Positions 14,549 to 18,733 of a DNA stretch of 64,000 bases are shown here, in pieces. Origin of the DNA: Oikopleura dioica (taxonomy: Eukaryota; Animalia; Chordata); NCBI GenBank assembly GCA_907165135.1, contig OU015566.1, positions 992,001 through 1,056,000 on the forward strand, read 5' to 3'. The position numbers and the translations under genes are program-made. The notes below the pieces were generated by a model. That model made no database searches. It worked only from the letters and a program-made list of their open reading frames with translations, and was not told the DNA's origin. How positions within the stretch are numbered: position 1 is the stretch's first letter; the number at the start of each line of letters is the position of its first letter.

Positions 14549-15908
14549 TTACTGAAGAGACATCATGTCGTTGAGAGTCTTGTCGAGTTTTTCAGAAATG
14601 TCGCGAAAGTTCAACTTTTCTTGGTAAAGAGAATTGATCAAATCGTCGATGGTCGACTCCAACTTAAAATATTTTTAATAAAACGAAGGGTTTGAAAACA
14701 CACCTTGTCGACAGATCGCTCGGCAAATTCGGCTCGAGTATCGGCGAGCTTGAACTCTTCCTGGAGCTCCTTGACTTTGCTCTCGTATTCGTCTTCTTTG
14801 ACGGAGTTGTCGGCGACAATTTGATCCATTTCTCGAACCTACAAGTCGACAGTCAAGAAATTGAAAAGAGTAAAAATAAACTTTGTCCTGAAGCTGTCGG
14901 AGCTCATCTTCAGTGGCTCTGCCTTTGCCCTCGAATTCCTCGGCTCGCTCAATGATGCGCTCAAGATCGTTGGAGACAATTTTCAACTTTCGCTCGGAAT
15001 CTTCATATTTGTGATTCGAGCTCATTGCGATCTGACGAGCTTCCTCGAGCTGAGTTTCCATTTGTTCAGCTGCTTCTTCGTTCTGAAAATAATGAAACCG
15101 GGAATTCTAGCGTTTGTGATGGTACCTGGAAAGATTGCTGCTCGGCGATTCTTTTTCCTTCCTCGTTTTCTTGGTAAGATTTTTCGATCGCGGAAATTTT
15201 CTCCAAGTTTTCGTTCAATCGAAGGGTGCATCGACTGGTTTCTTCTTCAAGAAGAGCAATTCGTCGCTAGAATTTGACAATCAGGACATAAGGACCCCCA
15301 TCCGACTTTTCCTTCGAAAAATAAAAAATTTTAAAAACGCCATATTTTTGGCGTCCTCGGGTTAAACTTGCTTAAAAAACTCAATTAAAGAAATTTTTGA
15401 CCTAAAAAATCAATATTTTTGCCAAAATTTGGGCAAATTCGCCAATTTTAGAGATAGACCCCCAAAAATGCAGCCTCAAAATCGTTTTTTTTACCCGTAG
15501 AATCCATTTCCGGGGTCAAAATTTAAAAATTCCGTAATATGATTTTTCGAAAAAAGCTGACGGGGGGTCCTTTAATGGTAAGAATATTTATGTACCTTGA
15601 GAGCTCCAACTTGCAATTCGGCATCGACGACTTCCTTGTCAACTTCTTCAAGCTTGTCTTGGGTGCTCTTGCTGCTGGAAACAGTGTTGTCGAGCTAAAA
15701 TCAAGCTCAAGAGAATATTAAATCAACCGATAATACTCACATCGTCCTCGGTCTTGGCGATAGCTCGCTGGACCTTGTCGACTTCTTTTTCGAATCGAGC
15801 AAGTTCCGATTCAAACTGAGCGCAAACCGTTTCCGATTCCGTCGCTCGTCTGACAGCCTCCTCCTTCTCCTTCAGGAGGCAGTCCATCTTGTGCTTGATC
15901 GACTCCAT
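14549..15908 (-). CDS. TPM: Tropomyosin
   Basis: MESIKHKMDCLLKEKEEAVRRA, RRIALLEEE, KYEDSERKLKIVSNDLERIIERAE, LKEEFKLADTRAEFAERSVDKLESTIDDL-like segments, and LDKTLNDM. Six GT-AG exons; TAA 14549-14551. Confidence 0.88.
15292..15570. mobile_element. MITE with GGACCCCC termini in a tropomyosin intron
   Basis: AGGACCCCC ... GGGGGGTCCT termini. Internal sequence shared with 17856-18195 and 22612-23394. Confidence 0.7.
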
Positions 15909-16315
15909 CTTTTATCTTTTCTAAAAAAAATATTTTGAGCTGAGCAACTTCTGTTAGCGCTGATGCCAAACTGCAGAAGAGAGGATGCCGCATACAGAGT
16001 CACGCTCTCGGCCTGACACGCTGTTCTTTCAACAAGTGCTCGTAAACTATGTCCGTCTAATGAAGTGCGAGCGTATTGAAATCAGGTTCGAAGTTCGAAC
16101 CGGCCTCTTGATTCTTTCATCATAGAAGAAATTAACTATAACTACATCTGATTGACCTAAATATTTGTATCTGCTCCGATCAAAGCGCAATACACTGAAA
16201 GCCTGTTCGATCCATCTCGGTACAGACTTTCTATAACCGCCAAATATGTTCCATCTTGGTAATTTTTCTCTTTATAAGACGGAGATGCCCTTAAGATAAT
16301 CATCAAAAAGAAACC

Positions 16316-16550
16316 ATGAATACAATAATTTTGATTTTCTTTGTCGGCAAAGTCTTCGGATTTAATATAAAAACCCATCCAGATACAGGTAAAATTTGAA
16401 AAAGCAATCATTAATTCTATACAAGAACTAAACTTGGACATCATAACTGACGAACATGGAGATCATGACAATAAGATGGAACTTGCGAGTGTTCTTGACC
16501 ACTTGTCGAAAGAAAGAGAATTCGGAAAACTTTTTGGATATATTCTTTGA
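16316..16550 (+). CDS. Small secreted peptide precursor A (65 aa)
   Basis: Exons 16316-16388 and 16426-16550, separated by a 37-nt GT-AG intron. Protein: MNTIILIFFVGKVFGFNIKTHPDTELNLDIITDEHGDHDNKMELASVLDHLSKEREFGKLFGYIL*. Supported by its paralog at 16780. Confidence 0.8.
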
Positions 16551-16779
16551 ATCGTTTCTTTGCAATAAAAATATTGAATGAAATATACAGTATATTAATA
16601 ACTCCTGGAAAAGTTAGGAGTAACTGTGGTAAAAAAGAACAGGGTTTACCCCCTTTTTTGTCCCATATATTGTCAAATTGTCAGGTCCAGATGTCAAGTC
16701 TGTACCATTCTTTATGAATACAACTGACATCTCCTGTATAAAAAACATGCTTCGGGTCATCAAAAGAAGATTTGAAACA

Positions 16780-17467
16780 ATGAAAATAGTTCATTTTTCC
16801 TTGATGGCTTTCAACATCGTATTCGGCCTGCGAATACCAACCTCGATTATAAAAACTAAGCCGGATATAGGTTTGTTTCTTTTCGTAGTAGGGCAGAGTT
16901 GCAAATTTGCTGAGCTGATCTGAATGATCTGATTTGCTCAGCTCAGCTAAGACAATTTTTACTCAGCGCGGCTCAGCTAAATTATTTTCGAACATGATCT
17001 GCTCTGCTCAGCTCAGCTCAGCTAAGACAATTATCACTTAGCTCAGCTCAGCAAACTCAATAATTTTAACAAAATTTTAATACAAAAAGAGACAAAAACA
17101 GCTGAGCTCAACTAGCTCAGCTCCGCTCTAATTTGGTTCCGCTCAGCTCATCTCTTTTAAACAAAAGGTTCGCTTAGCTCAGCTCCGCTCAATGAGCTCT
17201 GAAAAAGGCTAGCTCAGCTCATAGAAATTTTTACTCAAGTCAGCTCTAGAAAATAAATCAAAATTTGCATCTCTTTAGTAGGGCCCCTACTGTAGGGGTT
17301 ATCATTCACGCTGCCCCTTACCCTTAACCTTACCCCCTTAAGAGTTGAACCTGGACGTCGTTAACGACGAGCATGGCGACCACGATAATCAGATGCAAAT
17401 CGAGAATGTCATCAATCATTTGAAAAAAGAAAGAGAATTTGGTCTTCTTTTTGGCAATTTTCTTTGA
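16780..17467 (+). CDS. Small secreted peptide precursor B (71 aa), tandem paralog of A
   Basis: Exons 16780-16870 and 17343-17467; same phase-1 intron and same 125-nt exon 2 as gene A. Protein: MKIVHFSLMAFNIVFGLRIPTSIIKTKPDIELNLDVVNDEHGDHDNQMQIENVINHLKKEREFGLLFGNFL*. Confidence 0.8.
16894..17275. mobile_element. hAT-type MITE with GCTCA arrays in the intron of peptide gene B
   Basis: CAGAGTTGCAAATTT ... AAATTTGCATCTCTT, with a perfect 8-bp duplication TAGTAGGG (16886-16893 and 17276-17283). Confidence 0.88.
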
Positions 17468-17600
17468 TCAAATATACTTCAACCTTATTGGTTAAATGCA
17501 AAATAAAAGTAAATTTATTGAAGAGTCTTTTATCTGTTGTTCAGTAAGTTCGGTATCCAGCAATTTCAATTTTTCATGTTCAAAAAACAAGTTTCCAAAA

Positions 17601-18406
17601 TCAATCTTCAATGACGCAAAAACAGTGGCAGGAAAAAGTGTCCCAGTCCCAAACTTCAGTCGCGCTTCCCACTTTGCAGTTGGAAACATCAGCGAGCTCG
17701 CAGCCGTGGAAAAGGGTCCAGGAGGCTTTGCACTGCTCGTTTTCGACGATTCGGTGGGCGTTTTCCGTCCAGAACTTGAAGATTGACCATTCTGGCACGG
17801 GCGGGAGGGCGGAGACGGCGCTAGAAGAAAATGATTGAGATAGACATTAATTTAAGGACCCCCCCGTCAGCTTTTTCATTCGACAAAAGAATTTTTTTAA
17901 AAACACCATATTTTTGGTTCTTCATGCCTCCTCAGGTTAATCTTACTTCAAAAATTTGATATGAGGAATTTTTGACCTAAAAAAATCAATATTTTTGCCA
18001 AAATTAGGGCAAATTCATCAATTTTCGGCGAAAAGTCCAATTTTCAAATTCGATTATGGGGATGAAGGAGTCGAGATTGATCCTCAAAAAAGGAAGCCTC
18101 AAAATCGTTTTTTGACCCGTAGAATCCATTCCGGGGTCAAAATTTTAAAATTCCGAAATTTGATTTTTCGAAAAAAGCTGACGGGGGGGGGGTCCTTAAA
18201 TTAAAACCAGAATCATAACATCTTTCTCATTCAAGGACCCCGCCCCCCTTTTGTCAACAATTTTCGAAAAATCCATTTCCGGGGTAAAAATTATGAAAAG
18301 CCGATTTTTATTTTTCGGAAAATTTTCGGGGGGGGGGGGATCCCGGATCCTTAAATATTTCCTTGAAAGCTAACCTGATTAAAATTGTCAAAAGAAAACT
18401 TTTCAT
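17601..18406 (-). CDS. Small secreted 6-cysteine protein (83 aa)
   Basis: Exon 1 18406-18375 (MKSFLLTILI-AG|gttag) joins exon 2 17820-17601 in phase 2. Protein: MKSFLLTILISAVSA-LPPVPEWSIFKFWTENAHRIVENEQCKASWTLFHGCELADVSNCKVGSATEVWDWDTFSCHCFCVIED*. Confidence 0.72.
17856..18195. mobile_element. TTAA-flanked MITE with GG termini (Kolobok-like)
   Basis: TTAA|GGACCCCCCCGTCAGCTTTTT ... AAAAAAGCTGACGGGGGGGGGGTCC|TTAA. Confidence 0.8.
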
Positions 18407-18733
18407 TGTCGCTTTTTTTTCTTGTTTTCTTCGCTATTTTTGAAAATGGGTGTGACTATTACGTTGGTACTTTTAAAGTGATGTTTGTGGCCCGAGGCGC
18501 GTGCGCTTTTATGCGCAAATAATCGGACCACTTGTGTTTGGCAAGTGAGCCTGATGTAAAAAACAGCGCGGCGTGGCGCAGACTTTGCTGCATTCTCGTT
18601 AGTCTCTAGCTTTTTTGGCACTTTTCTAGGGCAGATGAAACTGGTTTTCAAGGTCGTCCACAGCGTTGTCGAAGACATTATGTAATGAAAGCAGGGTTTT
18701 TTTGTAAAAATGATTTATTTATATAACAATTTT

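Follow-up and report, generated by a model that had tools for sequence, protein, structure and literature searches.

Among the peptide systems described so far, the closest to the genes reported here are Ci-LF, Ci-YFV/L and Ci-NTLP of Ciona, which are tunicate-specific, unamidated neuropeptides with hydrophobic C-termini and have no relatives outside the tunicates (PMC6475428). The presumed Oikopleura dioica receptors fall in the urochordate LF-receptor clade (PMC6475428), and larvaceans should therefore possess ligands of a similar type. Neurotensin and neuromedin N provide a second point of comparison, being unamidated peptides that carry the C-terminal motif P-Y-I-L and lie at the end of their precursor. 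A third is given by antimicrobial precursors with an anionic pro-piece, in which a variable cationic mature peptide is combined with a conserved signal peptide and pro-piece.

The window analyzed here (the whole stretch of 64,000 nucleotides at 992001-1056000 of contig 4, from whose first letter all positions are counted unless another contig is named) contains a tandem pair of genes whose products, together with those of their relatives, constitute an undescribed family of small, acidic, His-containing and probably secreted peptides, seen only in larvacean-type DNA. As in the Ciona peptides, the C-termini of this family are hydrophobic and unamidated, and the family likewise has no known relatives outside the tunicates. 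However, no sequence kinship with Ci-LF or Ci-YFV/L was detected, a profile search with HMMER having returned marine-metagenome ORFs alone. One Ciona peptide ends in -YFL, as do most O. dioica members. Ciona precursors contain several peptides, with ends in -LF or -YFV/L, between basic sites, whereas the precursors of the present family contain one conserved C-terminal block, a conserved acidic His block and no canonical dibasic site. As the Ciona peptides were compared by description, we take the resemblance of the tails as a lead only. With respect to neurotensin, the small gene 1 precursor has G-Y-I-L, with its carboxyl group free, at the extreme C-terminus, but the Pro and the flanking K-R are missing in the family, no sequence match was obtained, and Y-I-L is confined to gene 1, whose orthologue ends in Y-F-L while the family consensus is G-Y/F-F(-L). 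Compared with the anionic-propiece antimicrobial precursors the pattern of conservation is reversed, and the tail is uncharged or acidic.

The first-pass annotation of this DNA had described a head-to-tail pair of two-exon genes of 65 and 71 codons, and a direct read of the DNA together with exon-wise translation matched this arrangement, including the phase-1 intron and the 125-nt exon 2 common to both genes and the identity of 27 of the 41 C-terminal residues. It was also right in stating that the ORF list largely overlooks the pair: with the default cut-off of 60 aa both genes are missed, and only pieces of 27, 38 and 40 aa and one read-through of 81 aa represent them. The pair comprises the following features:

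16316-16550, + strand: gene 1 as a whole, 24+1+40 = 65 codons, TGA stop
16316-16388, + strand: gene 1 exon 1, with ATG, hydrophobic signal-peptide-like N-terminus and conserved IKTHPDT(G) end, kept in the orthologue on metagenome contig L016
16389-16425, + strand: gene 1 intron, 37 nt, GT..AG, phase 1, with an in-frame TGA
16426-16550, + strand: gene 1 exon 2, 125 nt, with the conserved acidic His-containing part, the C-terminus EFGKLFGYIL and TGA
16564-16569, + strand: gene 1 poly(A) signal AATAAA, 14 nt past the stop
16737-16742, + strand: gene 2 TATAAA box, 43 nt ahead of the gene 2 ATG
16780-17467, + strand: gene 2 as a whole, 30+1+40 = 71 codons, TGA stop
16780-16870, + strand: gene 2 exon 1, with ATG, signal-peptide-like N-terminus and conserved IKTKPDI(G) end
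16871-17342, + strand: gene 2 intron, 472 nt, GT..AG, phase 1
17343-17467, + strand: gene 2 exon 2, 125 nt, with the conserved acidic His-containing part, the C-terminus EFGLLFGNFL and TGA
17502-17507, + strand: gene 2 poly(A) signal AATAAA, 35 nt past the stop

In exon 1 of gene 1 the highest mean Kyte-Doolittle hydropathy over 8 residues was 3.3, and small residues occupy positions -3 and -1 after residue 15. In the same way each of the 12 first-exon peptides that were modelled begins with M-(K/R) and a hydrophobic run, as does the continuous ORF on metagenome contig L019, and several of them have small residues at -3/-1. The signal peptide was thus judged from exon 1 alone by its hydropathy and the -3/-1 rule, which is a rule of thumb. 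With these N-termini, secretion of the products appears likely.

The similarity of the two genes is restricted to their coding parts. Exon 2 of one gene retrieved exon 2 of the other at E = 2e-13 in a six-frame search of the 64.3-Mb, 19-contig genome. A repeat search of the pair unveiled a 128-nt direct repeat (71%), corresponding to exon 2 and its acceptor, and a 25-nt repeat (80% identical) made up of the end of exon 1 and the donor, with nothing further in common, and an exon-only DNA alignment of the genes gave 70%. For comparison, when gene 1 and gene 2 were aligned without gaps, their intron ends and their 3' flanks were only 19–30% identical, and local alignment scores for their promoters and 3' flanks were those of shuffled sequence. 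The differences in exon 2 are distributed as 13, 5 and 19 over codon positions 1, 2 and 3, giving a saturated pS of 0.87 and a pN of 0.17 (Nei-Gojobori; Fisher p = 5e-10). Since pS is saturated, pN low and the noncoding sequence unlike, the duplication into gene 1 and gene 2 is old and the coding sequence alone has been held. Judged by this substitution pattern, the likeness of the two genes is a result of selection and not of chance.

The product of exon 2 contains no Cys, has a net charge between -1 and -8 and consists of two conserved blocks around a variable stretch of 7–8 residues. Block 1 reads x-N-L/F-D-x-x-x-D-E-H-G-D-H and is missing in a subfamily B described below; block 2, which is found in all members, reads L-N/S-H-L-x-K-x-K/R-E-F/Y-G-x-L-F-G-Y/F-F(-L)-stop. 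Invariant within block 2 are the His that lies six residues upstream, at P6, and, in the tail, E, G, L and G. Directly before E-F/Y-G a K or R is present in 13 of 15 members, the two others being paralogues with N or I at this position. Likewise, 13 of 15 members have retained three His, and in most members D-E-H-G-D-H is as conserved as the tail. At the tail neither a dibasic (KR, RR or KK) nor a furin-type site was found; the site is K-x-K/R, with a basic P2 or P4 in only two or three members. Furthermore, the products have no C-terminal Gly as an amidation signal, all members ending in F, F-L or I-L at the stop, and no internal peptide repeats, with one conserved C-terminal block per gene. 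For the six-row alignment of exon 2, AlphaFold predicted one long helix comprising residues 13–39, with low confidence (pLDDT 59).

Whereas two genes had been noticed in the window, and stand as a tandem, the family really comprises six copies in the O. dioica genome in addition to relatives in marine metagenomes. Six-frame peptide searches followed by profile searches of all 19 contigs retrieved these six copies and none beyond; as in all database and genome searches, single exons served as queries. All six were found in the same exon context, and in four of them the signal-peptide exon is complete and is followed by a phase-1 intron of 37–472 nt. The copy on contig 5 (L003) also has its signal-peptide exon in full; its phase-1 intron measures 39 nt and ends in a stop, and its product terminates in ...F-G-Y-F. 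Two copies on contig 1 are arranged head to head with 1.5 kb between them:

contig 1, 2950620-2950742, - strand: copy L004, exon 2 intact
contig 1, 2952150-2952355, + strand: copy L010, a member of subfamily B

For L004 no exon 1 was found, either by aligning first exons from the other loci or by a scan for hydrophobic ATG-ORFs, and this copy may be truncated or decaying. Subfamily B consists of two shorter contig 1 copies, L005/L009 and L010, in which a 16-residue hydrophobic exon 1 and a 41-nt phase-1 intron are followed by D-L-Y-W-D/E-N-W... and then by the C-terminal block. Block 2 is kept in this subfamily, whereas D-E-H-G-D-H is missing and only one of the three His is present.

In public sequence collections about eight clusters of unnamed marine-metagenome ORFs exhibit the layout of the family. 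When 1.84 billion representative proteins were scanned with a HMMER profile, six of them matched (E = 2e-18 to 2e-4), and a second word search using longer ORFs added five more relatives of the same kind. A first word search with the 40-aa exon-2 alignment, restricted to lengths of 22–70 aa, had given no match, probably because the relatives are unspliced ORFs of 49–98 aa and mostly fall outside this range; those inside it evidently had too few exact words in common with the query. All database relatives are unspliced genomic ORFs, unnamed or 'hypothetical', on short marine-metagenome contigs (ENA including TARA Oceans, JGI, Logan), and none of them is from NCBI or UniRef. They owe their database entries to prokaryote-style gene callers, which ignore the short introns and read through them. 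Three entries (P0002, P0007 and P0009, from L017, L023 and L015) were called with TGA as Trp and run past the true stop, and one relative (P0006) is mislabelled 'protein-arginine kinase activator McsA'. A separate pattern scan of metagenomes had a sole match (L011), a GC-rich bacterial-type ORF with 18 residues in common, which was rejected as chance.

On the metagenome contigs a hydrophobic exon 1 is followed by a phase-1 intron of 39–55 nt located directly before x-N-L/F-D, a coding exon 2 of 114–120 nt and a poly(A) signal soon after the stop. Of 11 loci, 7 have a TATA-like box 43–49 nt upstream, the TATAAG of gene 1 included, and 9 have AATAAA or ATTAAA 1–43 nt past the stop. On L019 positions 313-555 form one continuous 80-codon ORF without an AG acceptor before the conserved block, which suggests loss of the intron or its exonisation in that lineage. 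P0001, from L016, is orthologous to gene 1, the two being 85% identical in exon 2, and P0002, from L017-18, is orthologous to gene 2, with which it shares 37 of 40 exon 2 residues. As gene 1 and gene 2 have separate orthologues, their duplication is older than the split of those lineages. The intron of the L016 orthologue measures 39 nt compared with 37 nt in gene 1, which is a frame-breaking indel. On two more distant contigs the neighbour genes, one of them without any Pfam family, are 60–71% identical to O. dioica genes; this supports a larvacean origin of both contigs, though it is not proof.

Rates of substitution between close relatives were used to follow selection beyond the paralogues. 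The mature region had been proposed to be under constraint, and dN/dS analysis of paralogues and orthologues bore this out, with values below 1 in exon 2:

gene 1 versus L016: dS 0.37, dN 0.068 and omega 0.18 for both exons; omega 0.19 in exon 2 and 0.17 in exon 1
gene 2 versus L017: dS 0.59, dN 0.031; omega 0.05 in exon 2 and 0.54 in exon 1
L029 versus L021, an environmental pair: omega 0.23 in exon 2 and 1.06 in exon 1
L030 versus L020, an environmental pair: omega 0.55 in exon 2 and 0.21 in exon 1

Pooled over the four independent close pairs, pN/pS was 0.061/0.265 = 0.23 for exon 2 (p = 2e-7) and 0.130/0.280 = 0.47 for exon 1, so that the C-terminal part is indeed more constrained than the signal-peptide exon, as had been supposed from the two genes of the window. 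The intervening sequences of close relatives differ in length (37/39, 54/55 and 46/45 nt) by indels that are not multiples of three, while the exons stay in frame, and several of these sequences contain stops. Frame-breaking indels and stops in the intervening sequence therefore constitute evolutionary evidence that they are introns. The substitution data make a strong case for purifying selection on the family, and on the evidence of sequence comparison gene 1 and gene 2 are protein-coding genes under selection.

The DNA in and around the pair contains three further features:

16146-16313, + strand: conserved element upstream of gene 1, with 2 differences in 168 nt versus L016; its TATAAG box occupies 16273-16278, 43 nt ahead of the gene 1 ATG
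16894-17275, strand not assigned: MITE-like transposon in the gene 2 intron, 382 nt, with 15-nt TIRs (13/15 complementary), (GCTCA)n-rich
14675-15908, - strand: tropomyosin exons (Pfam PF00261), the first coding exon at 15723-15908, transcribed away from gene 1

The upstream element is about 99% identical to the TARA contig L016, versus a synonymous difference of 29% in gene 1 itself (Fisher p = 1e-7); between the same two sequences the intron differs by about 15% and the 3' flank by about 9%. It is single copy in the genome, and an Rfam search of positions 15000-18500 gave only sub-threshold microRNA-like noise and no family for the element. We consider it probably a tightly constrained promoter of gene 1, which may also serve the divergent tropomyosin gene. 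Its near-identity to a TARA Oceans contig and the very short introns agree with O. dioica as the source of the DNA. The tropomyosin matches remained below the gathering score of PF00261 because single exons were compared. The MITE-like element is bordered on either side (16886-16893 and 17276-17283) by the 8-bp target-site duplication TAGTAGGG and has at least 40 dispersed copies in the genome at 75–83% identity. Without it the gene 2 intron would measure 82 nt, and the 39-nt intron that L017/L018 have at the same site is empty. A dispersed repeat whose translations contain '...FRKKLTGG...' flanks the gene pair (about 15430-15720 and 17995-18280) and is also found among the dispersed repeats upstream of L004; it looks like a short interspersed element.

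Searches for known families were negative throughout. For the four exon peptides of the window Pfam gave no match at E <= 10, and for 12 aligned exon-2 peptides the best E was 0.088. The best match among PDB sequences had E = 0.13, the ESM Atlas gave no usable match, and a full-text literature search for the family motifs returned nothing relevant. Together with the HMMER scan of representative proteins described above, these results uphold the earlier remark that no known family can be recognized. The apparent absence from ascidians refers to protein collections, and profiles of 40 residues are of limited reach.

As the best overall explanation, to which we assign a probability of roughly 0.45, we propose that the genes are functional two-exon genes for secretory precursors with an active C-terminal peptide. 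Each gene would encode a precursor of 50–70 residues, and exon 1 would act as a cleavable signal peptide that brings the chain into the secretory pathway. Within the Cys-free, net-acidic product of exon 2 the pro-region would be formed by the acidic part with its His residues and the active end by the C-terminal block, which would be cut free after the nearly invariant K/R, with the invariant His six residues upstream. The resulting peptide of 9–10 residues, hydrophobic and with a free carboxyl end, would then function as an extracellular signal. The cleavage and the ligand role of the C-terminal block are a tentative part of this proposal. Cleavage is favoured because the basic residue is nearly invariant, the His at P6 is invariant, the block lies at the natural C-terminus and subfamily B keeps this block alone; it is weakened because the site is non-canonical, two paralogues are without the basic residue and block 1 is equally conserved where it is present. 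The missing amidation Gly and the low confidence of the AlphaFold model also count against the proposal. According to Devi's monobasic rules, as they are reportedly formulated, a monobasic site with an invariant His at P6 would still be a possible one. The main rival is that the chain stays intact as an acidic, helical secreted protein of about 45–50 residues, which could bind a metal (Zn, Cu, Ni or Ca) via H-x-x-H and the third invariant His, and for which roles as a factor of the extracellular matrix (house), in the gut lumen or in the packing of secretory granules are possible. We regard an intact chain as less likely, even though it would account for conservation at both ends of exon 2 and not just in the tail: the conservation of D-E-H-G-D-H is unusual for a mere spacer and thus favours a function of the intact protein. 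The retention of three His in most members, the negative net charge, the long helix predicted by AlphaFold and the missing canonical dibasic site agree with it as well, but the two O. dioica copies of subfamily B, in which D-E-H-G-D-H is missing and only one of the three His is present, keep the C-terminal block, the structure model is of low confidence and the metal binding is putative.

The first-pass annotation had also considered host defence, in which case the genes would encode antimicrobial precursors in which an anionic pro-piece is followed by a membrane-active peptide at the C-terminus. Tandem duplication, the order of signal peptide, acidic region and hydrophobic tail, and the G-x-x-x-G spacing would suit such precursors; the tail, however, is neutral to acidic rather than cationic, and evolution is slow in the mature part and faster in the signal peptide, the reverse of the usual pattern for genes of this kind, which makes a host-defence role quite improbable. 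Equally raised at the outset was the concern that these could be exons of a larger gene, terminal ones in this case, or parts of a transposon, and one may add decaying pseudogenes, as L004 is without a recognizable exon 1 and a transposon lies inside the gene 2 intron. Yet this transposon is confined to the intron and missing from the orthologue, both genes have their own ATG, TATA-like box, stop and AATAAA, and the upstream neighbour, tropomyosin, is on the other strand. Only six copies exist, all in the same exon context, and purifying selection on them is strong. We therefore consider the idea that the genes are not independent units as largely refuted, with hardly any probability left to it. 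Returning to precursors with an active C-terminal peptide, a larvacean-specific signalling system can be envisaged, at present as a rather unlikely extension, in which an unamidated E-F/Y-G-x-L-F-G-Y/F-F ligand would act on a tunicate-only orphan GPCR (e.g. of the O. dioica LF-receptor clade) and the D-E-H-G-D-H/His triad would render its storage or activity metal- or pH-dependent.

Larvaceans, the sister group to all remaining tunicates, rank among the most abundant members of the zooplankton. To our knowledge their peptide signals are almost unknown, and most genes of this kind are too small for annotation. Taken alone, the genes described here add another orphan family whose peptides are probably secreted. 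Its gene structure and a diagnostic motif are now defined, and it is represented by six copies in O. dioica and by relatives in ocean metagenomes, with clear evidence of selection. Furthermore, it illustrates that metagenome gene callers already store unspliced read-throughs of animal micro-genes, which can be used for comparative tests.
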